Below are positions 25,501 through 58,895 of a stretch of 64,000 nucleotides of DNA, piece after piece. Position 1 is the first letter of the stretch, and each line of letters opens with the position of its first letter. Position numbers and translations under genes: made by a program. A model generated the notes under the pieces. It was not told where the DNA came from, searched no databases, and saw only the letters and a list, made by a program, of their open reading frames with translations. Source of the stretch: Macrostomum lignano (Eukaryota); assembly GCA_002269645.1 (NCBI GenBank), contig NIVC01000521.1:399876-463875 (forward strand). The letters are read 5' to 3'.

Positions 25501-26252
25501 CGAAAAATCCCCCCCTCCTCCCCGTCAATTAGGGAGACCGCGCGAGACCCGTCCGTCTCTTCCCTGATCCCCACCCGCTGCTGCTCCAGCGGCTCTGATT
25601 CCTCCCTCATTGAGGCATCATCACACCAGCAAACAAATGGAGAGTTGGGAGAATCAACAGGCTTTCCCCGGCTGCGTGATCCCAGATTTTTTTCACTGAA
25701 GAGTTTTTAGTCCGATTTCAGTATAAAAATTCAATCCCATGACATTAAAATCGCAGACAGGAAAATTTTGGGAAAGTACACCTTACCCGGTTCAAAATCT
25801 ATAAGATGATGCTCCGTCTCTTACTTTTCTCAGGTGAGAAGCCCTACAAATGCGTGCAGTGCGGCAAGGCCTTCAGCCAGTCGTCCAACCTGATCACGCA
25901 CAGCCGGAAGCACACCGGCTACAAGCCGTTCACCTGCAACCAGTGCGGTCGCAGCTTCCAGCGCAAGGTGGACCTGCGCAGGCACACGGAGACTCAGCAC
26001 GCCTGTCCCGCCGCAGCTGCCACCGCCGTGGCTGCCGCCGGCTCCCTTGACACTCGCAGCCCGTCGCCAATGCAACTGATCCCCACTGCCTCGACGGTCA
26101 GCAGGCAGCAGCAGCAGCAGCAGCAGCAGTTGTCATACTCCGTAGACAGCATTCTAAGCAGAAGTGACAGCTCAGGCGGTGCTCAATCCGCAGCAGCAGG
26201 CAGCATCGCCGAGACGATGGCCGGTTCAACAACAATGGAAGCCATGGCTTAG
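19425..26252 (+). CDS. GFI1: Gfi1/Senseless/PAG-3 family C2H2 zinc-finger transcription factor, 593 aa; join(19425..19512, 20099..20464, 23633..24278, 24385..24647, 25834..26252)
   Basis: Six fingers carry the Gfi-diagnostic sequences [66 protein letters not shown] and [14 protein letters not shown]. All junctions are GT-AG and in phase (1782 nt). Exons 1-2 are less certain than the finger exons. Confidence 0.93.
20099..20464 (+). CDS. GFI1: Gfi exon 2 (Ala/Gln-rich)
   Basis: cgacag acceptor, GTGAGC donor, phase 1 to 1; poly-Ala/poly-Gln typical of transcription factors. Confidence 0.8.
22180..23483 (+). mobile_element. Mariner (DD34D) DNA transposon in Gfi intron 2, left TIR truncated
   Basis: Right TIR (reverse complement TACGAGGGTCACTCAGAAAGTTCTTAGCCTGA) at 23454-23485 ends in TA; left copy 22180-22203 matches the inner 24 bp (2 mismatches) but lacks the outer 8 bp. 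Confidence 0.93.
22358..23419 (+). CDS. Mariner transposase, intact, 353 aa
   Basis: N-terminal HTH region, WIPHQL linker, [20 protein letters not shown]; 34 residues between the second and third catalytic Asp. Confidence 0.96.
   Translation: MKLENRDFRAMMYLHFKQGKSPAESYQTLQNVFTHVCPSYATVKNWFAEFRRGRESLEDEHRSGRPCDAVTPENICAVSSMIAADRRVTYQQIQQEIGIGSGSVHAIMHEHLGVRKLASRWIPHQLSDVQKDTRVAWCRFMLQKFESGTSRRIWDILTGDETWIYQYDPESKRQSAMWTFGDEDSPTKFRRSRSVGKQMVACFFMRTGHVASVSLEDRQTVTADWYTTVCLPKVFSAVSQRRPRCGMRGVLLHHDNASAHTAAQTLEFLADCGVQLMTHPAYSPDLAPCDFFLFPKCKEILKGQVFSSPEEAVNEFKNIIEELRDEDWRHCFDSWFHRMQACINAGGEYFEHL
23633..24278 (+). CDS. GFI1: Gfi exon 3 (Pro/His-rich region and ZF1)
   Basis: cctaacccgcag acceptor with CTAAC branch point; [21 protein letters not shown]; donor GTCAGT. 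Confidence 0.93.
24385..24647 (+). CDS. GFI1: Gfi exon 4 (ZF2-ZF4)
   Basis: ctccag / GTGAGA; [19 protein letters not shown]...HTYIHT. Confidence 0.97.
25834..26252 (+). CDS. GFI1: Gfi exon 5 (ZF5-ZF6 and C-terminal tail)
   Basis: ttttctcag acceptor; [55 protein letters not shown]; stop TAG. Confidence 0.96.
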
Positions 26253-26508
26253 GCATGGGCTTGAATCAATCCATTGGAAACTGCGTATATAAGATGTACT
26301 GTAGCCAACCTGGAATTCATGCGCGAGTAGCCAGCCCCAATGAGTCCCCCCCTCATGTTCACGCGGCCGTATAAAGTCTCATTAAGTTTCTCTCTGCTGA
26401 CAGCTCCCGCGGGTGGATGGAGAGCGAACAAAGAGCTTCTATGCAATCAATGGGACCCAGCTGGACAAAGACTCAGCTTATAGAGTAGCGCTGATAGTGG
26501 GTGATATC

Positions 26509-26514
26509 AATAAA
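26509..26514 (+). terminator. Candidate polyadenylation signal of Gfi
   Basis: AATAAA 257 nt after the stop codon. Confidence 0.5.
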
Positions 26515-27409
26515 AACATGCAGAGAATTATGGAAGAACTGATCAGTTTTTATGGGCAAAAAATTGAAATTGCTCCCTCAAGTGCAACAGATGCTCGCGG
26601 TGACCTCGCGACAATTTATTGACCAACTTATGTTAGAAAGCCCGCGCAGGTCCGCTTGAAGCTCTATGCATAGCTGTCTCTAAATGTATTTCTACATAAA
26701 TTAATCTTTTTTCGTTTTGCTTTTTTGTTTTGCTTTTTTTCACCGGATACTTCATGTGCAGCCCCAGGCTCCATTGTAACTGCAATCCAGGAGGAGCCAC
26801 TGAAGCACCTGCAGAGTTCTGCTGCACCTTTGCGTGAATTATTTCCGCCACTGACATATTTCCTTTTGCTTTCAATACTTTTTGTTTGTTTCTTTGTGAG
26901 TGTCTTCTTTTGCGCTGCATATTTTGCTAATTCTGTGCACCTTTCATATTACGAGGGACAAGAAGACTCTTCATCACCCCCAAAACATTGTTGAATAATT
27001 ATGAATTCTGCTGTTCAGAATCCTCTATTCTAAGTTTTGTTTTTGTGAAACTGTCGTGTTCATTCACTCAAAAAGTTATCGTATAATATATTTATATATT
27101 ATTATTACTACTAATACCGCGAATAATATATAAAAGTTCGACTGCAATTGCACAAAGTACTCACACACACTTGAATACAAATATAAATAGACTAAAACAT
27201 GTGACTGCGTTGATTAAAAAAATAATATAAAAATTACAAAATCTAAAAAAACAACTGACTTTATCTTTGGTATTCTTTTTGCCTAAGATGGTCTGCTCTT
27301 AGTGCACAGTTTACCAGACAATATGGGTATGCATGAGTTTTTGTATGAGCTGCGGGCTGCCGTTTTCAATTTTCATTTGCGATGTGCAACCTGATTGTAT
27401 ATTTTACCT

Positions 27410-28113
27410 AGTACTGGCTAACTCATTAGCTCAGGTATTGGCTAACTCATTAGCTAAGGTCTTGGCTAACTCATTAGCTCAGGTATTGGCTAACTCATTA
27501 GCTCAGGTCTTGGCTAACTTATTAGCTCAGGTCTTGGCTAACTCATTAGCTCAGGTCCTGGCTAACTCATTAGCTCAGGTCTTGGCTAACTCATTAGCTC
27601 AGGTCTTGGCTAACTCATTAGCTCAGGTCTTGGCTAACTCATTAGCTCAGGTCTTGGCTAACTCATTAGCTCAGGTCTTGGCTAACTCATTAGCTCAGGT
27701 CTTGGCTAACTCATTAGCTCAGGTCTTGGCTAACTCATTAGCTCAGGTCTTGGCTAACTCATTAGCTCAGGTCTTGGCTAACTCATTAGCTCAGGTCTTG
27801 GCTAACTCATTAGCTCAGGTCTTGGCTAACTCATTAGCTCAGGTCTTGGCTAACTCATTAGCTCAAAATCTTGGCTAACTCATTAGCTCAGGTCTTGGCT
27901 AACTCATTAGCTCAAAATCTTGGCTAACTCATTAGCTCAGGTCTTGGCTAACTCATTAGCTCAGGTCTTGGCTAACTCATTAGCTCAGGTCTTGGCTAAC
28001 TCATTAGCTCAGGTCTTGGCTAACTCATTAGCTCAGGTCTTGGCTAACTCATTAGCTCAGGTCTTGGCTAACTCATTAGCTCAGGTATTGGCTAACTCAT
28101 TAACTCAAGTCTT
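27410..28113 (+). repeat. 24-bp minisatellite TTGGCTAACTCATTAGCTCAGGTC, about 29 copies
   Basis: Direct reading; highly homogeneous. Confidence 0.97.
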
Positions 28114-29694
28114 GGATAGACATTAGCATAAGTTTTACAACGTCTGCAACTTAACTACTTAAATTTGCTTCGAACTCAGCCAACCCCTTCGAATGGATCA
28201 ATTTAAATCCTACCAAATCCCGAAAGTCATTCGCGGCGAGGAACATAAAAAATTGAAGTCAAAATCGAAGGCAGCGCATCTGGGCCACAAAAGCACAAAC
28301 TCACTCTGCCAGTTTGGGAGATTCCCCAGTTTCAATAACTCGATAAAAAGCTCGGAAAACTTCGAGTCCCCAGATTCGGCAGAACGGTACACCCGAAGCT
28401 CATTGCTGCTGGCCCGGTTAAATTCCCTGAATTATGCATGCGGCCTTGTAATCCGAGCAGATTAGCGGCCACTTATCCGGGTGCAGGCTAATGGCCTCAT
28501 CCGCAACCCCACGGGATCGCCTCATACCACTCGCGGCTTGGACACCAACCGCTGAGAAGTCGATTTGGGGGATCTGGGAGGTGATGCGGCAGAGAGGAGA
28601 GAGAGAGAGGCTGGAAACCAGTGAACTGCGCGCCGCGGATTAAACAGGATGAAGCAAAACTCTTTCCAGACTCGCTATGCCTGTGCCAGCCTGACCGGGA
28701 GTGCAGAGAAAAGTTGCCAGACTTGATGAAGCTCCCCCCCCCGGATCCAGCTTAAAAACAACGGTAGATTATACTGTCCGAAAGTGAGGCTCCTGAGGTC
28801 TTATAGCTCGTAATAACCATATCGAAAATTCAATTCGACCGCTCCGCCCCCAAGTCTTGAAAAGTTTCCAGTGAATTTCTAGTAATAATCAGATTGGTGA
28901 AAACTGTGGGATCATGAGCGAGTGAATGACAAGAAGAGAGTATAGTTGGGGACGTTTAGCACCTGGGGAAGTCTCACGCGGAGTCCTTGTCAAGGTTTTC
29001 CCATTAATAAAGTTGAAGAGAGGGACGGAGCGAGAGTGAAGTTATACATATACACACGCATGAAAGAGGAAAATTTACAATTTTGATGAAATTTGATGAA
29101 ATAAGCTCAGCGAATGAACCAAATGGAAAAGTGGAGCGATCCGGGATGGAGAGTCTGCATCAGTTTTTTAGTAGACTTGCTCACAGTCTCAGCTCAGGGA
29201 ATCTGTTTAAGCATTACCCATGGGCAGTTATTTCACTCCTCTAATGGCACTTCGCTTCCTGCAATGCTCAGAGGTAGATAAGGGGAATATAGCTTAGGCC
29301 ATTCCAACAGGTGTTGTCGGGCAGGATGCAGCAGTGACGGCTGGGAGTTCAAACTTGCTAACCACTATCTGATGCAAGGATTATAAAGTATCCCGTTGAT
29401 AGCTTTAGGCTATAGTGTTTGTGCAGACTCCCGGACACTGAGTGGTGATGGGGCTTTAGGATTGTTAAACTTGCTGTTAACTCCCGGCTTTGGACTCGTG
29501 AAGTCTCACTACAATATGTATGAGTTTGTTTGTCTCTGAAATGCTGGGATAATTACAATATTTGCCGATCCCATCAGCTGCCTGCTGAGATAATCTATTA
29601 TAATCTATTAATCAGGCTACATCACACTGCTTCTCAGTTCGTGTCCTCTCATTATGAAACCAAGACTTAGTCTCCATCTCCATCTCCCTCTGAT

Positions 29695-30470
29695 TCTCAG
29701 TCTCAGTTTCACTCAATCTCAATCTCACTTAATCTCAGTCCCACTCAAGCTCAATCTCACTCAATCTCAGTCTCACTCAATCTCAGTCTCACTCAATCTC
29801 ACTCAATCTCAATCTCAGTCTCACTCAATCTCAGTCTCACTCAATCTCAACCTAAGTCTCACTCAATCTCAATCTCAGTCTCACACAATCTCAACCTAAG
29901 TCTCACTCAATCTCAACCTAAGTCTCACTCAATCTCAATCTCAGTCTCACACAATCTCAACCTAAGTCTCACTCAATCTCAATCTCAGTCTCACACAATC
30001 TCAGTCTGAATTTCAATCTCAGTCTCACTCAATCTCAGTCTCACTCAATCTCAGTCTCACTCAATCTCAGTCTCACTCAATCTCAGTCTCACTCAATCTC
30101 AGTCTCACTCAATCTCAGTCTCACTCAATCTCAGTCTCACTCAATCTCAGTCTCACTCAATCTCAGTCTCACTCAATCTCAGTCTCACTCAATCTCAGTC
30201 TCACTCAATCTCAGTCTCACTCAATCTCAGTCTCACTCAATCTTAGTCTCACTCAATCTCAGTCTGAATCTCAATCTCAGTCTCACTCAATCTCAGTCTC
30301 ACTCAATCTCAATCTCAGTCTCACTCAATCTCAGTCTGAATCTCAATCTCAGTCTCACTCAATCTCAGTCTCACTCAATCTCAGTCTCACTCAAGCTCAG
30401 TATCACTCAATCTCAGTCTCATCAAACCTGAGTCTCAGTCGCATTCAACCTCAGAATCTCAGAGTCTCAG
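29695..30470 (+). repeat. 16-bp minisatellite TCTCACTCAATCTCAG
   Basis: Direct reading. Confidence 0.96.
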
Positions 30471-30828
30471 GAGTCTCAGAGAGACAGCTCACTGCTGCCG
30501 CCCAGTTTCAGTCAGCTTAGCGGCCCCTGAACAGGCAGCTCAGCAGCTGCCAGGCAATGGCGGGAGGCGGTCAGGCAGGAAATCATCGCTTAGGCGACAC
30601 CGCAGCTCAGATGGACCAGTGCGGCCGCTTAATCCGTTTAAAAAATCCGCCGACCGAACCCTCGCATCGGTGCTGAATTAAAGATGAATCCGAGCTGCGC
30701 ATGCGGGAGAGGGGAGTCTGAGGGCGGGCAGGGAAATTCTTCCCAGTATATAGTTGTGATTCGCGCCCAACTCCGCGCGGGGGGGGGGGGTAGAAGCCGA
30801 TATATACTCTCCAGGGGATTTTACTGGA

Positions 30829-30866
<38 letters not shown>

Positions 30867-32267
30867 TTCTCTCTCTGAAAAATAGCAGATTAAGGATTTG
30901 GGATTATTTCATAATTATTTCATCCTTGTTCCCAACCGACAACCCCATCTCCTACAGTTCGCAACGCAGTCAAACAGCACGGGGAACCTGAGACAACAGG
31001 CCGCAGTCTCCTCATCTCTCGCTCCCCAGTCTCTTGTGATAAATGGCACAGTGGGCAATCATCAGTGGACAGGCTTGTAGAACAGTCGGGAAAGCGGGAA
31101 AAAGAGGGCAGATGTGGGGGGGGCCTTCTCGTTTGCTGTTGCTTGCTTCTGCTGCTCCTAGAAGAGGGAGAGAGAAAGGGGCAAACCAAGCGCTCGCGCG
31201 CGCGCGCTTTATCAGGGCGAGGCAATTTCTGCAAAAGACTCCGAGAGCACAGAGATTATATCAGCTAATGAATTTCCCGAGAGACAGAGACAGAGGCAGA
31301 GAGGGGTGTTTTGGAGCGGGGCTGGCGGAAGGCTTGAGGTGACTCCAGTCCCTTGGGCCTTCTCCCTCACGTTGTCTCTGCCGCACTGGCCACTGGGCTA
31401 AATCTGCAGCGGACCAGCCCTGCCCGTGGACTCTCCGCTCACCATGCAGTCCCGTCCGCCTGTCTGCAGATAACTCGATTTCTCAGCCCCGGACTGGCCC
31501 TCAGCAACAGAATAAGAGGGGAAAAGGGAGATTTGTGCAAAAAAACTGAAATCCCCTCTCATTGAGGATGTGTTAGCCCGAGGGTGCACGCTAGCCCGCC
31601 TTTGTGGGGCTGATTATATTCGTTAATTTTTGGGTATTCGCTCAAATCGCAACCGGATAGATGAAAGGCGGCCCCAGCTATGATTACGAGTTTATCCCTT
31701 TTTTCCCTATCGACCCTATAATCCCAACCAATAATTCAGCCCCATCGTAGAGGGAAATCCATGCAGGCGGAGCGCAGTCTAAAAATAGAAACGAGGGATT
31801 CCCCCGCAAACTAGCAAACGAAGCCGTCAGAGCTAACGTAGAAAGGATCTCATTGAAGTGAGGAAAAGCTGTTCAAGACTCGAGTGGGTCAAGAGAACTA
31901 TTCCCAGTTCTCATCCCGCGGACGAAAATTCCCAAAGAAGGATTAAGCAATTCTGGGATTAAAATTTCGGCGACTTGGGTGGGGGTTGGAGAAACTTCGC
32001 TACACCAAGCAAATTACTTCGAATTTCATCTTCACCCTAGTTTGTTGGGATAAAAAATTAACGGTAGGGTTCAGCAGCAGGGTTTTAGAAAGCCGGGCAG
32101 ATGGTCCTCCAACTGACGAGCTCGTCAATCAGAATGCGAGAGCTGAGCACAGTGTCCACACTTCAGGGTGGACATTCATCTGGCTCCCGTTGGACTCGCT
32201 GTCTGAAAAATAATTTCTTTTATTTGGGCGCCTTCCAAAGCATTTTTAGCCTCTCTAATTTCTGCTT

Positions 32268-32538
32268 GCAGCCGTCAGATTGCAGTTTAAAGCCGTCAGA
32301 TTGCAGTTTAAAGCCGTCTGATTGCAGTTTAAAGCCGTCTGATTGCAGTTTAGAGCCCTCTGATTGCAGTTTAGAGCTCTCTGATTGCAGTTTAGCGCTA
32401 TCTGATTGCAGTTTAGCGTTATCTGATTGCAGTTTAGCGTTATCTGATTGCAGTTTAGCGTTATCTGATTGCAGTTTAGCGCTATCTGATTGCAGTTTAG
32501 CGCTTTCTGATTGCAGTTTAAAGCCCTCTGATTGCAGA
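32268..32538 (+). repeat. 21-bp minisatellite TCTGATTGCAGTTTAGCGCTA, about 13 copies
   Basis: Direct reading. Confidence 0.95.
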
Positions 32539-33197
32539 TAATTTCCTCGCTCTGAGGTCGCATTTCTGAGAGTCGAAATGCCAAACCAGACGGCACCATC
32601 TCGCTCCAGCAGTTTGTGGCGCGGTGATTTACCTGGGAGGCGGGACCGCTGCCGCCCCCCCCCCTACCCTCCGAGGTGAGCTGCTCTGCTTTTTTTAACA
32701 CACTCAAGAAATTTCCTCGCACAAGAGAATTAAACAATAGCTGAATAAAGGCTTCTTAACAGCTTGTTCTATTCTAAAGATGGACATTCAACGATGGTCG
32801 GCCTTTCTGGAGAGGCTGAACTTCGCGCGAAATAAATTAGTGAAGAGAAAATGCCGAAGAAACAAAGGAAAGAAGCAAGTGGAATAGAGGAGAGGACAAT
32901 GCACAGAAAGAGGCAAAAAACCTGTACGAGTCGCTTAAAGTTCCTTCAGAGATGCATGAATGCTGCCCGCTGCCACTGGAGTCGCGAGGGTGTCAAGGTT
33001 TTTCTAACACCTCAAGCCACGGGATGCTGCATTCTTTGTGAGGGCGTCCTGTTGGACACCCGCTGTCTTTTAGCGCTTCATCAATGCGCCCAGCTTCTTC
33101 TTTCTTTGGCCCGGAGTCTCGGCTTTCCTTTTTTGGCCTCAGAGTTCTTTGGGTGGAGAACCCAGCGGGGGTTGAAATGAAAGGCGGCAGGGGTGTG

Positions 33198-33983
33198 GGA
33201 ATTCTATTCCTTCCATATTGGCTAGATTAGCAATCAATTCTATTCCTTCCATATTGGCTAGATTAGCAATCCATTCTATTCCTTCCATATTGGCTAGATT
33301 AGCAATCCATTCTATTCCTTCCATATTGGCTAGATTAGCAATCCATTCTATTCCTTCCATATTGGCTAGATTAGCAATCAATTCTATTCCTTCCATATTG
33401 GCTAGATTAGCAATCCATTCTATTCCTTCCATATTGGCTAGACTAGCAATCCATTGTATCCCTTCCATATTGGATAGACTAGCAATCCATTATATCCATT
33501 CCATATTGGATAGACTAGCAATCCATTGTATCCCTTCCATATTGGATAGACTAGCAATCCATTATATCCATTCCATATTGGATAGACTAGCAATCCATTA
33601 GATTCATTCCATATTGGATGGACTAGCAATCCATTATATTCATTCCATATTGGATAGACTAGCAATCCATTCTATTCCTACCATATTGGCTAGATTAGCA
33701 ATCCATTCTATTCCTACCATATTGGCTAGATTAGCAATCCATTCTATTCCTTCCATATTGGCTAGATTAGCAATCCATTCTATTCCTACCATATTGGCTA
33801 GATTAGCAATCCATTCTATTCCTTCCATATTGGCTAGATTAGCAATCCATTCTATTCCTTCCATATTGGCTAGATTAGCAATCCATTCTATTCCTTCCAT
33901 ATTGGCTAGATTAGCAATCCATTATATCCCTTCCATATTGGATAGACTAGCAATCCATTATATCCCTTCCATATTGGCTAGAT
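33198..33983 (+). repeat. 36-bp minisatellite TTCCATATTGGCTAGATTAGCAATCCATTCTATTCC, about 22 copies
   Basis: CCATATTGG at 33213, 33249 and onward. Confidence 0.97.
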
Positions 33984-34696
33984 TAGCAATCCAGTTTTTA
34001 GCGCTCAGCATTAGCCAAGAACCAGCATCTCAGCTGTTGTTAGCTACCATTTATTCAAAAAAGACAATTTAAACACAACCGAGTCGAAAAAAGAGCCACA
34101 GAAACACTCGAGTTGTGTCCATCGCAACACAGTCAGCTTCTGCATGGCTGTCAGTCAGAATCCACTTGTTAAGCAATAGAAAAACTTGTCAGCAAGTCCT
34201 GTTGTGTCAGTTCCACTGGGTAGAATTAGAAAAAACGAACAACAACAGGGATATTGCGGACTGGACAGAGATTGGCGTGACACCTTTGACAGTACACAGG
34301 TGAAACACCCAGCGAAACGCCTGTAAAGTTGATATAACGTTTGCTTGCTTCAAGCAAGTGGATTGATTGCCTTCAATTTGTTTGTTAAGAGCAAACGTCT
34401 GTCAAGTAATGCTAACTTCACGCCCGGCTCCTTGTGTTAACCAGGGCTTTTTCTATTGCACAAACACAATTCACTTAATAGGCAAAGGTGAGAGTGAGAG
34501 TGGAAAGAAGCGCACAGGAGGCTGGTTTAAGAAGCTACATCAGCCAAACGCTGAAGCCATGGATACCAAGCTGAGCTGAAGTTCGATATTAATTTTAGGA
34601 TACGGCCAATAGGCAGTGCAGGTGTAATTGCGGCCGGAATTTATTTAGTGTGACGCTTCACCCCGTTAAAAAAAGTTTCCTATTTTAATAACTATT

Positions 34697-34965
34697 ATTT
34701 TGGCGCCTTAAAGTCTCATTTTAGCGCCGCAACAACTCATTTTGGCGCCTCACACAACTCACTCATTTTGGCGCCTCACACAACTCACTCATTTTAGTGC
34801 CTCACACAACTCACTCATTTTAGCGCCTCACACAACTCACTCATTTTAGTGCCTCACACAACTCACTCATTTTAGTGCCTCACACAACTCACTCATTTTA
34901 GTGCCTCACACAACTCACTCATTTTAGCGCCTCACACAATTCGCTCATTTTAGCGCCTCACACAA
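34697..34965 (+). repeat. 26-bp minisatellite CTCATTTTAGTGCCTCACACAACTCA, related to the interior of the 10892 MITE
   Basis: First unit AGCGCCGCAACAACTCATTTT versus MITE unit reverse complement AGCGCCGCAGGCACTCATTTT. Confidence 0.85.
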
Positions 34966-35679
34966 CTTAGCCCCTCAGCCGATCACTAATTGACCTCATA
35001 ATGCTTAGTTGCTCAAATACATAATTATTCCCATATCAGGACTCGAAGAACTCGTGAAGGAAGTTCTGGTCTCCCTTCCTCCCCAAAGTCGAAAAATTGA
35101 AAGTTTTTGCATCAACGCTACAAAAATCTACAACACAGAGAAGCTGCCGCGGCTCCTTGCCCAAACCCCCGGGGCCGGTGAAGCTGATGAAGATTAGAGA
35201 GGGGCGGACAGTTTTGTAGGCTCATCTAAACTCTCAACTCGTGCAACAGTTTACAAATTAGCAGGCAGAAATTGGGGCCGCCTCATTAATAATTCATGCA
35301 GCTCAACCCCCGGCCCGCAGGCGAATAAGGGAATTGATGATGTTAAACTGCTTTTCACTTCTTCTTCTTCTTCTTCTTCAATTTTCCGCTTCTCAATCCG
35401 CTACATTGCGGCAGCGCATTGGGATAAACACAAAAATAATATACCTTGTAGTAGCAGAAGTTTTTCAGCTAAAATACTCCTAATAAGCCGTCTTGAATTG
35501 GGCAGGCACGAATATTGCAATGCGGTTGCTGGGGAGACAACTGGGGTGTTATTGGAATGCAACCATAGGATTCGAATCTAGTGAGAAAGTCTTTGTGCAT
35601 TTTTCTGCTCCTTGTAGCATTTATAGAGCGAAAACTAGTATTGAATGTAGTAGCTTATGGCAGATAGTAGAGTGCCTAT

Positions 35680-36300
35680 GAAGGAAGCAGAGTGGGTAGA
35701 AGTAGAGTGGGTAGAATAAGTGTGGGTAAGAAGCAGAGTGGGTAGAAGTAGAATGGGTAGAAGTTGATTGGGTAGAAGTAGAGTGGGTAGAAGTTGATTG
35801 GGTTGGAGTAGAGTGGGTAGAAGTTGATTGTGTAGAAGTAGAGTGGGTAGAAGTTGATTGTGTAGAAGTAGAGTGGATAGAAGTTGATTGGGTAGAAGCA
35901 GAGTGGGTAGAAGCAGAGTGGGTAGAAGCAGAGTGGGTAGAAGCAGAGTGGGTAGAAGTAGAGTGGGTAGAATAAGTGTGGGTAAGAAGCAGAGTCGGTA
36001 GAAGTAGAGTGGGTAGAAGTTGATTGGGTAGAATAAGTGTGGGTAAGAAGCAGAGTCGGTAGAAGCAGAGTGGGTAGAAGTAGAGTGGGTAGAATAAGTG
36101 TGAGTAAGAAGCAGAGTCGGTAGAAGCAGAGTGGGTAGAAGTAGAGTGGGTAGAATAAGTGTGGGTAAGAAGCAGAGTCGGTAGAAGTAGAGTGGGTAGA
36201 AGTTGATTGGGTAGAAGTAGAGTGGGTAGAAGTTGATTGTGTAGAAGTAGAGTGGGTAGAAGTTGATTGGGTAGAAGCAGAGCGGGTAGAAGCAGAGTCG
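35680..36300 (+). repeat. about 15-bp minisatellite GTGGGTAGAAGTAGA with variants
   Basis: Direct reading. Confidence 0.93.
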
Positions 36301-36574
36301 AATAGAGCAGTGTCGAGCCGTTCGTAAAGCACCTGAGAAGCAGACGGGGTGAAAACTCATAGTCGGAATGCTGTATGAAAGCCACAATGGTGGGGGAAAT
36401 GCAGAAGACAAGGCAAGGAGGCGGAGATGAGCAGCAGCAGCAAGCGGGTCTTAATTCCCCAAAATGGACAGCTGCATTGGACCCTGTTAGAATCTGTTAG
36501 AAACCCAGCAGCGAGGCCAGCACAGTCTCCAGTTCATGGGGGAGGGGACCAGTCAAGTCAATCTGCTTGTGCTT

Positions 36575-38231
36575 TTTTCTTTCTTTCTTCTTCAGCGCTC
36601 GTCAGCGGCGCGGCGGCGCCGAAATAGACGGGGGCCAACGCCCCATGTTCCGGAGGAGCGAGAGGGCCAAGCCCGGTTCGGTAAGGAGGCGCTCCACTTC
36701 AGTGCCGACCAGGCGAGTGCGGTGCGCGTCCCCCCTCGGGCAGCTGTAGATCGCGTGCAGGCTCGAGTCCGGTGCCCCGCAGTCCTGGCAGAGCGGGGAG
36801 TCCGTCAGGCCGAAACGGTGTCGGACCTCGGCGGCGAGCATTGAGGCACCGGCTCGGAGTTGGCAGACCGCCGTGTGCTCGGTCCGGCTTCTAGCGTGGA
36901 AGGTTGGCCAGGCCGGGGGCATAGCGCTGTCGTCCAGCGCACGGCGGTCACGGCGGATGGCAGCCTTGGCAGCGCCCAGCGAAATGGCAGCCGTGGTTTG
37001 CGGCAAGCGGGCTGCGGCGTTCGCAGCTCTGTCCGCGGCTTCGTTAGCGGGTATGCCGCAGTGGGCAGGGACCCAGGCGAGGTCAATATCATTGAGGTCG
37101 CAGGTGCCCAGGCTGATGAGGAAACGCCAGCAGGAGAGGCCACTCTCGGTGCGCTGATCTAGGGGGCCCGCTTGCAGGGCCGTGAGCGACGATAGCGAGT
37201 CGCTGCACAGCCGGATGCGGGCTGCGCGAGGGGCGATCTTCTCCGCGACAAAGGTGAGGGCGTCTTTGATAGCGCGCATCTCAGCGTCGAATGAGCTGCA
37301 GAAGCGGCCAGCTGGGCTCTTCCGGACGAAGGTCACCAGGTTAGTACCGATGATGGCGGCGCTGCCTCCTGGCCCTGTGCCGTCGGCAACGGAGCCGTCC
37401 GTCCAAATGTTGATGTCTGCTTCAGGTAGGTCCTCCAGGGTGTCGCGGGCGGCTGCGTTCCGGTCGGCGGACGGGTCCGATTTGCTGCACCTCGAGGCTG
37501 CCTCCAGACAGAACCGGATTCTGTCCGTGTGTGCCTCCCAGGGAGCGATACCGGGACTACATATGTCGTCTCTGATGTACTGGTCGAGATCGACGCTGGC
37601 TGGCATCTCTAGTGCCGCTCGGCGCCAGCAGTTGCGGAAAGGGCGCCTAGTGTCTCTGAGGTCGATGTGGGGCGTGTCAATTTGGGCGTCCGTTGTCGTT
37701 GGTCTCCTCTGCCCAGCCTCGTAGGTGCGGTTCTTCAGCCTCGGGCGCGTGCTCCTGGTAGCAGGTTCGTGTGCTGCTGCGCCTGGGCCCAATCTCAGGA
37801 TCCTTTCCCGGAGGCGGGCGGCTCTTTCGGAGGCGACGTGGCTGACCGGTGGGAGCTCGGCAAGACGGAGAACGCTTCGCGTGTCCGAAGGTAGGATGCA
37901 GCCTGTGATGATCCTGGCACAGGCAGCCTGTTGACGCTCGATGGAGTGCCTTGTTGAGGGGGCTGCCCCGCAGAGCCAGGTGCCCGCGGCGTAGTCGGCG
38001 ACAGCCCTGACAGTGCTGACGTAGGCGGCTCTCAGCGTATGGTGGTCGGCTCCGGTGCTGCGGTTGGCTAGCGCCGCAAGCGGACGGCGCCGAGCGCACA
38101 TACGAGCGCGGACGTCGGCCCCCTGTTTGTTGAATGCGAGCTGGTCGTCGAGGCGCACTCCCAGGTAGCGTGGCGCTGGGTCATGGGCCAGCGGTTGGCC
38201 ACCGATGGTGAGGCTGACCTTCTTCTTTCCG
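36575..38231 (-). mobile_element. 5'-truncated non-LTR retrotransposon (I group, Ingi-like) with RT thumb, RNase H and C-terminal CCHC
   Basis: RYLGVRLDDQLAF (RT end); RNase H residues IWTDGS, FDAEMRAI, CSDSLS, WVPAHCGIPANEAAD; CQDC..H..C knuckle; GAA/GAAA tail at 36575-36593; 12-bp TSD CTGCTTGTGCTT at 36563-36574 and 38232-38243. Confidence 0.93.
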
Positions 38232-38889
38232 CTGCTTGTGCTTGCTGCTGCAATGCTTGCAATGCTGCAGCAATGCTTGTGCTTGCTGCTGCTGCTGCTA
38301 CATGTGCAACAGAAACCCAACAAGCTCATAAATAAAACAGCTGTCCCTGTAGTCAGAGATCCCCCTCCCCCAGTCTTTCTTTCTCAGATGGGGGGTTGAC
38401 TGCAGACTAAGCTTATAGCATTCTCTTATTGTCAGATCTGCAAACTCTCTCCCCACCCTTCCCTCAGAATGCGCAGAAGAGAGTTGCCTGCCTGTCTTTA
38501 GTTTTGAAGCTATAATGGTAATGGCTAGTTAAAGCAATGAGTGGAGTGGCCCAAGGCTCGCAAGTGATAGCCCTCTTGGAGCTGGGGAGCTGCTGCTGCT
38601 GCTGGTGGTAGCGGTGGGCAGCAGGCAGCTAGCTAAGTGATTTCCCAGCTCACCAGCTCATGCTGTGTGTTTGAAGCCACTCACAAAACCGGCTCCTCCA
38701 CCGCCTCAAGCTGCAATCTAAAATCTAGGAAACTTTCAGCTGCCTCATTTTACCGCTGAGGTTTTCTCCCCACCCCCCAAACTGGTTGAGTGAGTGAGTG
38801 GGAGTTCTCAATTGTTTTTCCTCTGCTGGACAGTGTGGGCGTTGTGTTTCTATTTCAGAAATGGGACAATTTTTCTGCAAGCATGAGAA

Positions 38890-39204
38890 GGCGCCAGAGT
38901 TAGGGAGGCGCCAGAGTTAGGGAGGCGCCAGAGTTAGGGAGGCGCCAGAGTTAGGGAGGCGCCAGAGTTAGGGAGGCGCCAGAGTTAGGGAGGCGCCAGA
39001 GTTAGGGAGGCGCCAGAGTTAGGGAGGCGCCAGAGTTAGGGAGGCGCCAGAGTTAGGGAGGCGCCAGAGTTAGGGAGGCGCCAGAGTTAGGGAGGCGCCA
39101 GAGTTAGGGAGGCGCCAGAGTTAGGGAGGCGCCAGAGTTAGGGAGGCGCCAGAGTTAGGGAGGCGCCAGAGTTAGGGAGGCGCCAGAATTAGGGAGGCGC
39201 CAGA
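38890..39204 (+). repeat. 17-bp minisatellite GGCGCCAGAGTTAGGGA, 18 copies plus a partial
   Basis: Direct reading; each unit contains TTAGGG. Confidence 0.97.
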
Positions 39205-41933
39205 TACTATCCGAGCACAGTTCATGAATTGCGTGTGCTGAGCAGGGCACAATAAAACAAGGCCAAGAGCACGATAATAAGAGTTTGGTAGCACGCTGCA
39301 ACGGTCGGCCATGCAGAGGGGTTGGCCGGGAGCATCTGGCTGTCGCGTGAGAAATCGTTGCCCGGGGAGGTCAAGATCTGCCTAAATAATGTCTCCCACG
39401 TGGATCTCCCGAGGGGATCCCCAGGCGTCGATAAAAGAATGTTACCGCCGGACCCTCCTCCGATTCGAGCTCAACCCTCTCTCGAAACCGCTTGGTGGAC
39501 ATTTGGCTCGTAGAACTCTCACCTTTGTGAGGCGGGGCGAGATAACCTTGAGACCTCAGCCTTTAAAAACTATCCAAGCCTTGAGTTGTTGGCAAGCAAT
39601 TAGCCAAGGACGGTTCCACAGACACGCGGAGAGTACAAGGCCTTTTTTTATTGCGGAATTCTTGAACAAAGAACGGGAGGAGGAATTACGGACGGAAGGA
39701 AGGAAGGAAGGAGTTTGAGACGCCAGAGACTGAGAAGGTGGGCGGGACAAAAGATGCCGTTTTGTTGATGCGGCGGCGGCGGCGGCGGCAGGAGGCCCTG
39801 TCTGTTGCGCCGCTGCTCTATCACTAAACACAAAAGCATTGCTTTTCATCGTCTGCGCCTGCTCTTGGAGACTTGCGCGACTCAGCAACTTAATGAGCAG
39901 AGCAGTTAGCGTCTCAGCAGGGGGTCGGGGGGGGGTTCGTCTATAGTCTGAAAAATCTTCCCTACACTGCTTGCCATGCTGTTTGGGGATATCTGAAAAA
40001 CTCTAATAAAACCAATGCCTGCAGTTTGGCTTTGTCAAACATGCAATTAGCGGATGATGATGAATTTAAAAAACATCCCCATTAGCGTCATCTCCAATAA
40101 GAATGCTCAATTCTTCACGGCTAGAATTGGGGGCAAGCTGGAGCTGGATGATGGAGACGGCGGCACCTGCCGCATGCGGATGCTGCCAGGATGTGGAATC
40201 TGAAGGGGCCCCGCACTTGTCACACCGTCCAGGGGATTTGGGAAACTTATTTTTTCCCCAACTTTCATAATAGTTGCTCTGTAGGAATCTGTTTGCTGCA
40301 TCGCTTTGTTGACTGATTTCAAAGCAGACAGGAAGACAGGGGGAAGCGGAATCGGGGGAGTCTTTCGGTTGCCGTGACCCTCCATCACTCTCGTACACAG
40401 ACAGTATTTTTGATTCAATATTTGCTGCAGGAAACTTACAGCGGAACTTGCCAACCTAATCCCCTGCCCCGGGTGTGTTTGATCGGCTCCGGGAGGGAGA
40501 GCGACTCTCCAGGAAAACACTGAAGATTTCTCCGGCAGATTTTTCGCATTCCAAATATACTGGCTTCTTATCCTCGAAGATGGAGAAGTTTTAGTTGCTA
40601 TGATGCCGGATCTCGGTCTCCAGACTCCCCAGTCTCGCTCCAAGAATGCGGGGAAAATAAGGAGCGCGAGTCCCAGGTTAGTATAATAAAAATCTCCCAA
40701 CAAGCATCGGCAGAGCAGAAGGCTCACAATTGACAAAAGCAGAAGACAAAGCAAGCAAAGAGTAAGGATCGCAGAGAGAGTCGACTCGACCTAACAAGTT
40801 TTAGTTACATAACAAGCGCCTGAACGCCTCTACACGGGTGGGGGCGCCTCTTCAGACGGCGAATGCACGAGAGGAATCGAATCCCGCCCTCTTGGAGACT
40901 AAAACACCAACCTCAAAAAAGAGACTTCCAACACACACATATCTGTGAACACAAGCTATAGAGCAACAAGCAGTCAGAAAAAAGAAGCATATTTGCAGAA
41001 TCTGGGCAATACCACGCGCACAGAAAGGGAGAAATGATAAAGAGCTAAACTTGCCAACACAAAGCAAGACAACTCTCACTGCAAGCCTGCTCAGATCTGT
41101 CTGGGCCAGCAGGGCAGATAGGGGAATTAACGATCAACATCCGGATAATTCTTCACTGCGAACTGTCCGATTTTTGTGTCCGAACCGAATGCGCGGAACT
41201 GAGCGTCATTAATATCATGGTGGTATCAATTTACCCCCCCCTCCCTGCAAAGCTGACTTTTGTCGGCGAACGGAATTAGACTGCATGGCCCCTGCAACTT
41301 CAGCGTTATTTAAACATAATCTTCCACTTTCTTTAATTATTAATTATTAAACAGGTGGAATTCCGTATTGTTAGTAAGCAGACCCGAGTGGGCGTGTCAG
41401 CAGATCTTGTCAGTCAGGTATATCTTCTTGTTGTTGTTGTATCGACGTTTTCTATATTAGCCGGCATTGACTTCCTCAATGGTCTCTAGGGGGGGGGGGT
41501 TCTGGAGTTGCATTACATGCGAGCTCAGATAAATAGATTACTCCGGAGAGTAGCCGCTATAGTCGAAAGAAAACACCAGTGGGCGACGCGCAACTTTTGA
41601 GTCTGTGATTAACCAATTAGATAACACCGCCACGTTGGTGGGCTTTAGGGACAGAGACGATTTTCTTATCAATATTCGCCTCCAATGTTTGTTTCTCGCC
41701 TCGATTCACACGGGACCGAACACTGTTTCACAGCCACCTTAATTATCTGGCTTACATATGCTAACATATGAGATCTTGGCGTCCGTTCTGATGGCATGAT
41801 GTACAGTGCGCATGCTAATCTATACAGCTAGACTGTGGTGCGAGAAAACTTCTCTCAATTTTGGGATAGACATTTTTAATAGCCTAAATCCATACGGGCC
41901 AAGACTTTAATCGAGAAAGTGATCTAGTAGTTG

Positions 41934-42330
41934 CATCTGGGAGGGTGGCCGAGGCCCCGCCTGGAGATCTGGGAGGGTGACGGTAGAGCTTGGGGATCTG
42001 GGAGGGTGACGGTAGAGCTTGGGGATCTGGGAGGGTGACGGTAGAGCTTGGGGATCTGGGAGGGTGACGGTAGAGCTTGGGGATCTGGGAGGGTGACGGT
42101 AGAGCTTGGGGATCTGGGAGGGTGACGGTAGAGCTTGGGGATCTGGGAGGGTGACGGTAGAGCTTGGGGATCTGGGAGGGTGCCGGTAGAGCTTGGGGAT
42201 CTGGGAGGGTGCCGGTAGAGCTTGGGGATCTGGGAGGGTGACGGTAGAGCTTGGGGATCTGGGAGGGTGACGGTAGAGCTTGGGGATCTGGGAGGGTGAC
42301 GGTAGAGCCTGGGGATCTGGGAGGGTGGTG
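41934..42330 (+). repeat. 29-bp minisatellite GGGGATCTGGGAGGGTGACGGTAGAGCTT
   Basis: Direct reading; shares GGATCTGGGAGG with the 28-bp family. Confidence 0.96.
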
Positions 42331-43819
42331 GCGGTCAAGCAACAAACGATCTGGAAGGTGTCTGGTAGGTAAAAGGTATCACAGACACCTTTAACTTGCG
42401 TTAACGCTACAAGAAGTGGGCTCTAGTCGCACAGAGCAGGAAATTTAATTTAGCTTCTGTTTGCCATTTTTGCAAGAATCAGTAGCAGCCCTCAAACCCA
42501 GCCAGGTAGAAAAACGCAACTGAGAAATCATCTTGTTGAGCAGGTGAGTTTGATGAGCGACCAAACACTCTGGGGGGGGAGGCAGGGGAAGAGATAGACA
42601 GACTACAACTGAAGCCAATCGCGGTAGTGATTATTGGCACATGGCAGTCATTAAATGGGATTTAGCAATGGGGATGATTTTTTTGGGGGGGGGGGTTGGT
42701 GGAGCTGTCAGCAGCAGGCAGGGCTTCCTACCAAGGCCAACCTGTTTGAATAATTGAGTCTCGCAAGGGCAGCTGCGGGGCAAATCGCAATTAGAGTTCT
42801 GTTATTATCATGATTATGATTATTATTGTTGATGGAGGAGGCGACCACTTGACGTCCGCGGCCTACCTGTCACGCGCTTGTCATTCAAGGCCGGAGCTGA
42901 GAGAGAGAGAAAAAAACTACCTTTAGGGTAGTGGGCTGGTGCAGGGGTTGCTCTGAGAGAGCCTCACCTGTAGGATTTTGGACTGATGATGCTGCTGCAG
43001 CTCATCCCAGCTGACTCAATTGGAAAGTTGGCTATTTTTTCCCTAATCAGAAGCACTTATCAGTCAAAGAATGATAGCTGTAGGGGCATGGGCAAACTGC
43101 CCTCCCCCATGGCTTTAAGAGCCAGAAAAGCTTTGCAAAAAAGCAATTGCAAGCAAAACTCCCTCCAGAAACGTCAATGGCAAGGAGGGTGGGCTGCAGT
43201 GGCGATTGCAGCTGTCCTCTATCAGGACTAGAAACCAGCTTAATAGATATCATTTTTGTAGCGAGCCTGTCCAATGCATTCATTGATTAAATTGTCCACC
43301 ACACGGCTGTCATTAAATGAGTAACTACTGAGCAATGCCTTCCTTACTCAGTCTGGCCAACTTTTTTACAACTCTTCATACAACAACCCCCCTCCCCCGA
43401 CTTCATGCAGCTATAATCCTTCCACCCCAAAGAAATGTCTGTTGAGCAATAATCAAAAGTTTCTAAATTTTGCCCAATTTATTCCTTCCGTCGAGCACCC
43501 CGGGCCCAATAACCTCTTGACTCCGGAGAGGTTGGATCTCTGTCTCAGAGGTCTGGCTTTTTCTGAAATATTGTCAAGCTGTCAAAAATTCTATATTGTT
43601 GAGCCTGGCGATTAGTGAAGGTTTTGGAGCACTATTTATTCTCCAGACAGATGACACTGATGAGGCCTGATGCAATCCTCACGAAACCTTTCTAGGAAAC
43701 CGCTATCTACTAATTTGCTTATCTACTTCTCTCTCCACTCTGTTTTACTGTGTCTACCTCTCTAAAAATTTGACATTGTCTACCTTGTCTGATTACTTCT
43801 TTGCTTACCTATCAAAACT

Positions 43820-44420
43820 TCCTGTCTAGCAAACTCAAACCTCTCTACCCGGACTACTCTTATGTCTACCCTAGCTACTTCTATATCTACCCTAACTACT
43901 TCCATGCCTACTCTAACTACTTCTATGTCTACCCTAGCTACTTCAATATCTACCCTAACTTCTATGTCTATCCTAGGTGCTCCCACATGTCTACTCTAAC
44001 TACTTCTATGTCTACCCTAGCTACTTCAATATCTACCCTAACTTATATGTCTATCCTAGGTGCTCCCATGTCTACTCTAACTACTTCCATGTCTACCCTA
44101 GCTACTTCTATATCTACCCCAATTATTTCCATGTCTATCCTAGGTGCTCCCATGTCTACTCTAACTACTTCCATGTCTACCCTAGCTACTTCTATATCTA
44201 CCCCAATTACTTCCATGTCTATCCTAGGTGCTCCCATGTCTACTCTAACTACTTCCATGTCTACCCTAGCTACTTCTATATCCACCCCAATTACTTCCAT
44301 GTCTACCCTAACTACTTCTATGTCTACCCTAGCTACTTCAATATCTACCCTAACTTCTATGTCTATCCTAGGTGCTCCCATGTCTACCTGAACTACTTCG
44401 ATGCCTACCCCAAATAATTT
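43820..44420 (+). repeat. Degenerate about 21-bp repeat (CTACCCTAGCTACTTCTATAT) with higher-order structure
   Basis: Direct reading. Confidence 0.88.
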
Positions 44421-44707
44421 TCTACCTATTCGAGACTGTTTTCTATGTCCACTCCTCAACTCTGTATTTCCTTTATTTACTATTCTGTCTGTCCTGCTTG
44501 TTGCATTATCTCTAAACCTCTTTTCTCCCTCTTTTTCTTCTGTCGGTTGCCATTCACTTTAAGCATCGACAATTTCACATTTCAAGCGCGTCATCATTCT
44601 CCATTACGATTCCATTGTTGTAATAAAAATCAAATTAGAAAGCTGCATGCAATATCAGATATAATAATGAACAGCATTCAAGTTTGCAAATGACAAATAA
44701 ACAATTT

Positions 44708-44720
44708 TTTATTGTTTATT
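44708..44720 (-). terminator. Tandem polyadenylation signals, candidate RPAP2 3' end
   Basis: Two AATAAA on the minus strand (TTTATT at 44708 and 44715), the first such signals found beyond the RPAP2 stop and the adjacent repeat. Confidence 0.5.
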
Positions 44721-44849
44721 GAATTCGAAGGCAAGCATCACTTTACAAAAAATGTTTAATGCAGATAAGTAAAAGTTTGCTTTTGGCAATGCGGACAAAC
44801 ATTTAGGAAAATGCCCTTGGGTAAGAAATGGATGCATGTTAGGCGGAGA

Positions 44850-45772
44850 TAGAGAAGTAGATAGTTGGGGAAGAGAAGTAGACAGTGGGAGGGAGAGTAG
44901 ACAGAGTGGGAAGAAAAGTAGACTGAGGGGAGAGAGAAGTAGACTGAGGGGAGAGAGAAGTAGACAGTAGGGAGAGAGAAGTAGACAGAAGGGAGAGAGA
45001 AATAGACAGTGGGGAGAGAGAAGTAGACAGTGGGGTAGAGAAGTAGACAGTGGGGAGAGAGAAGTAGACAGTGGGGTAGAGAAGTAGACAGTGGGGAGAG
45101 AGAAGTAGACAGTGGAGGAGACAGAGAAGTAGACAGTGGGGAGAGAGAAGTAGACAGTGAGGAGAGAGAAATAGACAGTGGAGGAGAAAGAGAAGTAGAC
45201 AGTGGGGAGAGAGAAGTAGACAGTGGGGAGAGAGAAGTAGACAGTGAGGAGAGAGAAATAGACAGTGGAGGAGAAAGAGAAGTAGACAGTGGGGAGAGAG
45301 AAGTAGACAGTGGGGGAGAGAAGTAGACAGTGGGGGAGAGAAATAGACAGTGGAGGAGACAGAGAAGTAGACAGTGGGGAGAGAGAAGTAGACAGTGAGG
45401 AGAGAGAAATAGACAGTGGAGGAGAAAGAGAAGTAGACAGTGGGAGAGAGAAGTAGACAGTGGGGGAGAGAAGTAGACAGTGGGGGAGAGAGTAGACAGT
45501 GTGGAGAGAGAGAAGTAGACAGTGGAGGAGAAAAAGAAGTAGACAGTGGGGAGAGAGTAGACAGTGGGGAGAGAGAGAAGTAGACAGTGGAGGAGAAAGA
45601 GAATTAGACAGTGAGGAGAGAGAAGTAGACAGTGGAGGAGAAAGAGAATTAGACAGTGGGGAGAGAGAAGTAGACAGTGGGGGAGAGAGTAGACAGTGTG
45701 GAGAGAGAGAAGTAGACAGTGGAGGAGAAAAAGAAGTAGACAGTGGGGAGAGAGAAGTAGACAGTGGAGGAG
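44850..45772 (+). repeat. about 21-bp purine-rich minisatellite GTAGACAGTGGGGAGAGAGAA
   Basis: Direct reading; begins about 40 nt past the RPAP2 stop. Confidence 0.95.
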
Positions 45773-45809
45773 TCGATATCGATAAAGTCAGAGTCAGTAC
45801 TCAACACGC

Positions 45810-45960
45810 TCAAGAATCTGCGCCATCAAGCAGCAGCCGGTCAGTCTCGTCCAACAGTCTGGCCAATGAGCTGCCGCGTCGGTCAAGGCAGGCCCGAGCC
45901 TGAGCTGCCAGGCCTTCAGCGTCCACCGCCGATCGAAGTTCCTTCCTCCGCCTGAGCAGT
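45810..45960 (-). CDS. RPAP2: RPAP2 distal terminal exon
   Basis: Strong acceptor tttttgtcccttttattgttgcag; phase 2 matches exon 5; amphipathic [49 protein letters not shown], similar in length to the remaining C-terminal tail of RPAP2 homologs as recalled. Confidence 0.72.
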
Positions 45961-47211
45961 CTGCAACAATAAAAGGGACAAAAACTGCAGAGAGCGAAAA
46001 AGAGAGGCACCAGAAAGTGCAAAAAAGAAGCACTAGACAGTCAGTTTAACTCCCGGGGCTTCTCTCAATTAATTCGTTCGGCGGGATTCCGGTCGGTGCG
46101 GTGACAAGTTAATACTCGATGGTGGTTTCGGATTATTATAGATTGGTTAAGCGCTGCCGAGCGCAACACAGTGGGGAGAGGGCAGATGAGCTCAAATGAT
46201 TGAGAAATCGAAGCTGAGCCAGCAGCATCAGCAGCTGCAGTTTGCCACATAATTGCCACCCTCTCTGTCCCCTCCCAACCCCAAATTGAACCCCAGCAGC
46301 CACCGAGCGCCTGTGTCCCGTCCTGTCTGCCCCGCATGTGTAAATATATGAACCCCCGCCGGAATTAAATCATTTCCTGCACTCGTCATTACCTCATTAA
46401 ACAGCAGCCGCAGCAGCAGCAGCGCAATCGGTCTGGGGGGGGCTTCGGCTGTAGGGGGGGGGGGAAAGTCACTGGAGATCCCGGCCAGTGTCAGATTTCT
46501 CTCTCCCCTACTCGGCCAGGCGAGCTGGCGGCCGGCGACGGGACCTCGCGATGTCGGAGTCCCGCCATCTAATTCAATCAGTGAAAACCTGACAGAGGGA
46601 CTGCCCGACCGGCAAATCCCAGAGGATCGGCGGTGGGGGGGGGAGGAGAGTCCGGGGAGTGTCAGATGCTGCTGGGGCTCAAATCTCTCTGCCCCAGCCT
46701 CTTCGTCAGAAGCTTCTCGCGGACCCGCCGCTCTGCTGCTGTTGCCAGATTTTCAGCTCCTGCCTTTCCCGCCAATTTCTGGAGACTCTTCTCGGGAAAG
46801 CAGAAAAAACACACAGACACACAGAGATACAGGAAGAGACAGCATTTAATTAAACTGGATCGAGGGAGCGGAGATGTGCCAAAAGGAATGCGAAAACAGA
46901 TTAAAGCGGCCCCCGGCTAGGATGGATGTAGCCAAGGGAAATCCCTGGGACAGCTGGACTCTGGCCAGCTGAGGGTGGGCTGCATGGTCAGCTGCTGTTG
47001 AGAATTCGAGCTGAGGAAGATACCAAAACATGGCCGCAAAGGAATGGCTTGGATGGGGAGACAGGGAAATAACTGAAACTGCTGACAACTGGGCGCTGCC
47101 GACTGGAAAGGTGCGACATGCAGACAGGCAGACAAAAAAACAGACAGACAGACAGAGAGACAGACAGAGACAGACAGGCAGACAGACACGCAGACAGACA
47201 GATAGACAGAA

Positions 47212-47272
<61 letters not shown>

Positions 47273-58687: not shown

Positions 58688-58724
<37 letters not shown>

Positions 58725-58725
58725 G

Positions 58726-58764
<39 letters not shown>

Positions 58765-58789
58765 GACTAACTAACTAACTAACTAACTG

Positions 58790-58856
<67 letters not shown>

Positions 58857-58895
58857 GACTAATTAACTAAATAACTAACTAACTGACTGACTAAT

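Follow-up and report, generated by a model that had tools for sequence, protein, structure and literature searches.

Convergent Gfi and RPAP2 genes in the flatworm Macrostomum lignano: a plausible old microsyntenic pair and candidate regulatory block

Can two unrelated genes that lie side by side in a flatworm and in mammals owe this position to a common ancestor, and could the regulation of one of them have kept them together? The question is raised by a stretch of 64,000 nucleotides of Macrostomum lignano DNA (assembly GCA_002269645.1, contig NIVC01000521.1, positions 399,876 to 463,875 of the forward strand), hereafter the window, in which a gene of the Gfi transcription factor family on the plus strand faces an RPAP2 gene on the minus strand. 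The two genes are convergent and their stop codons are 19,557 bp apart. An earlier inspection of the letters (the sequence-only reading) had placed the end of Gfi at 26252 and that of RPAP2 at 45810, which are exactly the ends of the coding sequences, and had likened the pair to human GFI1 and RPAP2. Gfi-RPAP2 is a real adjacency and plausibly an old microsyntenic pair, a candidate for a conserved pair or a genomic regulatory block.

The Gfi and RPAP2 genes

The three final coding exons of Gfi are spliced via GT-AG introns and yield a product with six C2H2 zinc fingers. Finger 1 lies in an internal coding exon (about 23632 to 24278, plus strand) mapped from its open reading frame (ORF) and by peptide mapping. 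Its 5' boundary is approximate, with a polypyrimidine tract and a CAG acceptor near 23631 on that side, and its GT donor at 24279 gives a splice junction that regains the Gfi consensus HVRRSHSG. Fingers 2 to 4 are encoded by the exon at 24385-24647 (AG acceptor 24383-24384, GT donor 24648), fingers 5 and 6 together with the C-terminal tail by the last coding exon at 25834-26252, which closes with a TAG stop at 26250-26252. In a protein search the finger region has 72-84% identity to its best named matches, almost all of them GFI1 or GFI1B. It gives 165 bits across 82 residues with the structure of Gfi-1 fingers 3-5 (2KMK), and an alignment of 20 sequences has 65 invariant columns. Proteins of the Gfi/Senseless/PAG-3 family have six C-terminal C2H2 fingers, of which fingers 3-5 are nearly invariant among animals, and by this six-finger arrangement the predicted flatworm product is a member. 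A SNAG-like peptide was not found in any plus-strand frame of the window, where the mapped Gfi exons begin only at the acceptor near 23631; the SNAG repressor motif (MPRSFLVK) is present at the N-terminus of vertebrate Gfi proteins and not in fly Senseless.

An apparently intact mariner/Tc1 transposon lies at 22180-23477 on the plus strand, about 150 bp ahead of the first mapped Gfi exon and probably inside a Gfi intron. It is bounded by 24-nucleotide terminal inverted repeats (22180-22203 and 23454-23477, 92% complementary) and has an unbroken 385-codon transposase frame with the Pfam domains HTH_48, Transposase_1 and DDE_3.

RPAP2 has six exons on the minus strand, coding for 484 amino acids from the ATG at 62352-62354, in exon 1 (62127-62354), to the TGA at 45810-45812. 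Exon 2 (61477-61653) carries the core of the Rtr1 zinc finger with the motif CGFPLC; it matches human RPAP2 and, with E=1.3e-17, a hidden Markov model (HMM) of the Rtr1 domain built from 42 RPAP2 orthologues. The second half of the domain, with CYCSDAC, is found together with a variable region in exon 3 (60482-61130), whose 3' boundary is tentative and seems to need a GC instead of a GT donor at about 60481. Exon 4 (58372-58552) encodes the conserved C-terminal motif and is matched by a C-terminal HMM from 76 full-length orthologues (E=6e-8); the conserved C-terminal region of metazoan RPAP2, LP.VDS..Q..IRR.IV.EKL, is present in the window protein. The short exon 5 (58201-58269) is separated from the last coding exon (45810-45960) by an intron of 12.2 kb (45961-58200), 51% of it tandem repeat, which is the part of RPAP2 closest to Gfi, apart from the last exon itself; the other introns are each below 2 kb.

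The Rtr1 domain of the window protein aligns to human RPAP2 with E=1.6e-17 and to Kluyveromyces lactis Rtr1 with E=2e-6. An exhaustive library search found 613 RPAP2 relatives. The closest proteins are M. lignano RPAP2 models: P0003 has the variant residues of the window itself, P0002 bears PF04181, and the C-terminus of P0001 is identical to the product of the last coding exon. By its zinc finger and its C-terminal region, the predicted protein belongs to the RPAP2/Rtr1 family of RNA polymerase II carboxy-terminal domain (CTD) phosphatases (PF04181). The identities given to both genes in the sequence-only reading are thus borne out by the finger matches to GFI1/GFI1B and by the Rtr1 match to human RPAP2, and at the level of sequence the two genes are orthologues of a human GFI1/GFI1B-family gene and of human RPAP2.

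Model P0001 lacks the first two RPAP2 exons, and with them the core of the Rtr1 domain. It opens instead with MSGSQ repeats, about 130 residues long, that are labelled as pentapeptide repeat domains; they are the translation of a 15-bp minisatellite in RPAP2 intron 2 (window 61168-61404), and the model is likely mis-annotated. Intron 3 consists almost entirely of a (TAAC)n microsatellite (58688-60444) in which the unit occurs about 440 times.

The interval between the genes and its assembly support

The intergenic region (26253-45809) is without a detectable host gene. Ten tandem arrays, 5.5 kb altogether, make up 28% of it; tandem arrays cover 31% of the whole window, which is rich in minisatellites. 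On the minus strand, at 36605-38383, a 593-codon frame belongs to a 5'-truncated fragment of a non-LTR (long terminal repeat) retrotransposon and covers the end of the reverse transcriptase region and RNase H (Pfam RNase_H, E=1e-9). Outside this frame the intergenic ORFs have no Pfam domain, no Rfam family and no tRNA were found in the region, and neither GTF3C5 nor an intermediate-filament gene, two genes that matter below, lies between RPAP2 and Gfi in the window. The earlier statement that the genes converge with no host gene between them stands after the Pfam, Rfam and tRNA searches, which leave only tandem arrays and the retrotransposon fragment in the interval.

Such a repeat-rich interval invites the suspicion that a misassembly joined Gfi and RPAP2, a danger that the sequence-only reading had located between 27 and 45 kb. 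A further public M. lignano contig locus (L005; GCA_002269645.1, NIVC01001691.1), read with a 10-kb flank, bears on it. Collinearity between L005 and the window extends from 64000 to about 33200 and takes in RPAP2 together with 12.6 kb of intergenic DNA. The unique DNA of L005 is 97-98% identical and its exons 98.9%, and it is a second copy of the locus, whether allelic or recently duplicated. The overlap ends at about 33.2 kb because the flank was limited to 10 kb. Independent assembly support therefore covers 33.2-64 kb, which upholds the part from 33.2 to 45 kb, but leaves 26.3-33.2 kb, beside Gfi, without it. There are no N runs in the window. With this and the collinearity of L005 set against the 28% of tandem repeat and the uncovered segment, an assembly artefact appears highly improbable. 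In the annotation of M. lignano no gene is called on L005 in the 10 kb beyond RPAP2.

The element at 36.6-38.4 kb was considered as a possible host gene and ruled out: it is an RNase H retrotransposon fragment of which 1.7 kb is missing from L005. The missing part (36574-38273, with RNase H; about 31815-31824 in L005) is an insertion/deletion difference between near-identical copies, flanked by sequence (38274-38744) that is 98.9% identical in both. A 28-bp minisatellite unit, CAGCAACTGAGGATCTGGGAGGCTGGC[CT], forms two arrays on one strand, 52 kb apart (3910-4491 and 56629-57872), and has a diverged 29-bp relative in the intergenic region (41962-42327), which suggests a dispersed satellite or a transposon-borne repeat family.

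The only further host gene seen in the window is a P5-type (ATP13A-like) cation ATPase, represented by one exon (724-1479, minus strand; E1-E2_ATPase, E=2e-29) that lies about 22 kb upstream of the Gfi exons mapped here. Upstream of RPAP2, L005 has a succinyl-CoA ligase exon and, upstream of that exon, three adjacent open frames of 147-212 codons (L005 479-1990, minus strand), none of which has a significant Pfam match; one of them resembles an adenovirus core protein weakly, below the threshold.

Age of the pair

In cattle, a table from a genome-wide association study gives the gene order RPL5, EVI5, GFI1, RPAP2, GLMN (PMC12075139), and a human CpG inside GFI1 is 183,066 bp from the start site of RPAP2 and 183,054 bp from that of GLMN (PMC5674007). 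The two human start sites are 12 bp apart and the genes are therefore head-to-head; RPAP2, which sits between GLMN and GFI1, must then be read in the direction of GFI1. These sources confirm the mammalian adjacency and the direction of RPAP2 that the sequence-only reading had given. We take human GFI1 to lie on the opposite (minus) strand with EVI5 upstream, at a spacing from RPAP2 of roughly 70 kb. The mammalian locus at 1p22.1 and the flatworm locus are alike in that the orthologous genes are immediate neighbours with their 3' ends facing and no gene between. They differ in spacing, about 70 kb for human against 19.6 kb in Macrostomum, and in their outer neighbours, which are EVI5 and GLMN at 1p22.1 but the P5-type ATPase and succinyl-CoA ligase exons in the flatworm.

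The second vertebrate paralogue leads to a third gene. Chicken and other species share a conserved run of TSC1, GFI1B, GTF3C5 and CEL, in which GFI1B adjoins GTF3C5 (PMC7035288). The same gene set is found in cattle. GTF3C5 presumably lies downstream of GFI1B in the same direction, an order that fits a neighbourhood of the form Gfi-> <-RPAP2 GTF3C5->. Human 1p22 and 9q34 are paralogous regions of the two rounds (2R) of vertebrate genome duplication (BRDT/BRD3, TGFBR3/ENG, BARHL2/BARHL1, GFI1/GFI1B). Outside vertebrates, RPAP2, GTF3C5 and an intermediate-filament gene make up block 928 of Robert et al. (2022), classed as 'Bilateria novel' and assigned to the bilaterian ancestor (PMC8851819). 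In oyster, where POLE3 and CXorf56 are further members, the genes POLE3 (EKC18754), EKC18755 (listed as unknown), RPAP2 (EKC18756), GTF3C5 (EKC18757) and the filament gene (EKC18758) are consecutive, with CXorf56 (EKC18760) after them; the block also occurs in squid, with RPAP2 and GTF3C5 together (PMC8851819).

The vertebrate pairs GFI1-RPAP2 and GFI1B-GTF3C5 and the molluscan pair RPAP2-GTF3C5 together point to one Gfi-RPAP2-GTF3C5 neighbourhood before the vertebrate duplications. From a single pre-duplication neighbourhood, Gfi-> <-RPAP2 GTF3C5->, duplication and reciprocal loss would have left GFI1-RPAP2 and GFI1B-GTF3C5 as remnants; the flatworm pair, in the same orientation, would derive from the same neighbourhood and carry its Gfi-RPAP2 part to protostomes. 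We privilege the hypothesis that the adjacency has come down by common descent, which we consider probable; that the tail-to-tail pair of Macrostomum was inherited from precisely this reconstructed neighbourhood is favoured a little less firmly.

A number of observations weigh against this history. Neighbourhoods were read directly in 12 contig look-ups with 10-kb flanks, and those on the RPAP2 side outside Macrostomum covered short RPAP2 proteins of a dipteran, a hemipteran and a mite. In Drosophila ananassae the neighbours of RPAP2 are Cript and an FKBP/TPR gene, and Gfi is not among them (checked also by tblastn); in Aphis gossypii the next downstream gene is a furin-like protease; RPAP2 of the mite Halotydeus has no Gfi-like neighbour in its flank, again with tblastn. 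From the Gfi side, the gene that comes after is RPLP0 in the rotifer Rotaria and a cyclophilin gene at a Gfi-like locus of the mussel Potamilus. No gene named GFI1 is among the listed oyster RPAP2 neighbours or the block 928 listings (PMC8851819). None of 80 metagenomic Gfi loci has a match to the N- or C-terminal RPAP2 HMM; these models do detect the exons of the window, and only about 12 of the 80 loci have at least 4 kb downstream. A few compact metagenomic contigs extend several kb downstream and have, after Gfi, apparent RPL27A and RuvB-like genes, a WD-repeat protein or a large unrelated ORF, names that rest on reading ORF translations. Finally, L005 was examined for 9 kb upstream of RPAP2, and the main ORFs there (109-212 amino acids) have no Tau95 (GTF3C5) or filament domain, so that within the roughly 10 kb seen RPAP2 of M. 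lignano is not within five genes of GTF3C5 and a filament gene as it is in block 928. The published block resembles the flatworm locus in having RPAP2 as a member and is linked to Gfi through vertebrate GFI1B-GTF3C5; it differs in that it lists no gene named GFI1, and in that the flatworm combines Gfi with RPAP2 and shows no GTF3C5 for 9 kb beyond the latter.

The adjacency is thus present in vertebrates and Macrostomum and absent in fly, aphid, mite, rotifer, the mussel locus and the oyster RPAP2 neighbours. The sequence-only reading had proposed that the pair was kept since the bilaterian ancestor and had named its absence from most intermediate lineages as an argument to the contrary. The first claim has found indirect support, in GFI1B-GTF3C5 and in the RPAP2-GTF3C5 link of block 928, while every other readable invertebrate lacks the pair; the contrary argument gains part of its force from these animals and the metagenomic contigs. 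The lineages negative for the pair are mostly fast-rearranging or were read only to their 10-kb flanks. In a coral, the trematode Paragonimus, the fish Seriola, a tick and one ENA contig there is no informative neighbour inside the flank.

Two of the loci read have arrangements of their own. In the coral Oculina patagonica (L001 10001-24594) another multi-finger C2H2 gene comes after the Gfi-like gene on its strand; the two may be a tandem pair, with Gfi-type fingers in the first gene only (tblastn, E<=1e-8). In two related compact eukaryotic genomes of 57-60% GC (metagenome contigs L041/L042 and L043/L044), Gfi is followed by a convergent RPL27A-like gene and a RuvB-like gene, which is a different, locally conserved Gfi neighbourhood.

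How strongly does the flatworm pair call for history rather than accident? Where a genome has over 10^4 genes, we estimate the chance that one particular gene is the next neighbour of another at about 10^-4, and lower with matching orientation; scanning a whole genome against remembered human neighbours would, by the same reasoning, be expected to give a few coincidences. Independent juxtaposition in the Macrostomum lineage and in vertebrates, a resemblance without historical or functional meaning, would account for the absence of the pair from all other readable lineages, and for a flatworm RPAP2 without, in the 9 kb upstream, the GTF3C5 pairing that defines the published ancestral block. It leaves aside that GFI1-RPAP2, GFI1B-GTF3C5 and molluscan RPAP2-GTF3C5 independently put Gfi beside RPAP2 before the vertebrate duplications, and the lineages that speak for it are largely those that rearrange fast or were read over short flanks. 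We regard chance as rather unlikely.

An ancestral neighbourhood may have been retained passively, unbroken so far in two lineages without enhancer sharing or any other constraint. The adjacency is gone from many lineages at no obvious cost, the oyster retains RPAP2-GTF3C5 and yet no gene named GFI1 among the listed neighbours, and the window shows no direct sign of constraint. Flatworm genomes are generally regarded as strongly rearranged, however, and repeats and transposons have heavily remodelled this locus while pair and orientation persist. Pairs of a developmental regulator and a bystander are, moreover, a class reported as enriched among deeply conserved pairs (PMC3514665). Passive retention of the old neighbourhood we likewise regard as rather unlikely.

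Our preferred reading, inheritance of the adjacency from a common ancestor, meets no direct precedent in the papers searched. The literature search found none tying GFI1 and RPAP2 by synteny, a search outside which the supplementary list of Irimia et al. (2012) lies, and none combining Gfi1, Evi5 and microsynteny or gfi1aa and rpap2. The papers that ranked highest for microsynteny and regulatory blocks do not mention RPAP2, and the supplements of Schmidbaur (2022) mention neither Gfi nor RPAP2.

A possible regulatory block and its significance

If the pair is ancestral, what could have held it together? In the genomic-regulatory-block model, Gfi would be controlled by cis-regulatory elements on its 3' side, spread over the intergenic DNA and the 12-kb last intron of RPAP2 next to it. 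Any break between the two genes would then separate Gfi from its regulation, with RPAP2 as an indifferent bystander. The composition of the pair is that of such a block, Gfi being a developmental transcription factor and RPAP2 an unrelated RNA polymerase II CTD phosphatase. The known haematopoietic Gfi1 enhancers are on the EVI5 side, which speaks against the model. In the human 1p22 gene order, the interval between CDC7 and TGFBR3 presumably lies beyond RPAP2. An element of this interval is reported to silence GFI1 from about 800 kb away (PMC7583307), which fits the model.

Irimia et al. (2012) associate bystander genes with long introns and find developmental transcription factors with unrelated neighbours enriched among deeply conserved pairs (PMC3514665). 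Gfi-RPAP2 resembles these pairs and genomic regulatory blocks as a developmental transcription factor with a housekeeping neighbour, which has one long intron, though of uncertain significance. It departs from them in several respects: their pairs have at most four intervening genes and occur in at least four of 11 metazoan lineages, against two lineages shown for Gfi-RPAP2; the enriched orientation is 5'-5', against 3'-3' here; and the class is characterised by conserved non-coding elements and enhancers, whereas Gfi-RPAP2 is known here from its genes. The length of the 12-kb intron says little, because tandem repeats make up half of it and the genome is repeat-inflated throughout. Conserved non-coding elements are not discernible in a comparison with L005, the only sequence for this purpose, because its unique DNA is 97-98% identical. 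A search for conserved non-coding blocks between the two copies was uninformative, with exact runs of 100-460 bp everywhere and unique DNA differing by 2-3%.

Gfi enhancers in or around RPAP2, as the sequence-only reading had them, are accordingly putative; a regulatory lock would fit the composition of the pair and the intron. That such a mechanism caused the adjacency is a doubtful proposition. In the fullest version, Gfi, RPAP2 and GTF3C5 would have belonged to a single regulatory block of the bilaterian ancestor, Gfi enhancers lying in and beyond RPAP2. This block would have been resolved reciprocally into GFI1-RPAP2 at 1p22 and GFI1B-GTF3C5 at 9q34, and the macrostomid would have retained the Gfi-RPAP2 half in the same orientation, in a locus heavily remodelled by repeats and transposons. 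This version we hold to be unlikely, more so than the mechanism taken by itself.

Comparative evidence that gene order is constrained by long-range regulation comes chiefly from developmental regulators that have kept an unrelated neighbour over great evolutionary distances. Should the resemblance to mammals be due to chance, the finding amounts to no more than two genes correctly annotated. An ancestral pair would join the published bilaterian block of RPAP2 and GTF3C5 to Gfi, and the neighbours of human GFI1 and GFI1B would be explained as reciprocal remnants of one locus. The DNA 3' of GFI1, including RPAP2, would then be a candidate place for regulatory elements of a gene relevant to blood and to the development of the inner ear and of sensory cells. 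Transgenes can be introduced into M. lignano, so the regulatory claim is testable in the flatworm itself. If the block reading is true, Gfi-RPAP2 would be among the few pairs of a transcription factor and a bystander common to humans and flatworms.

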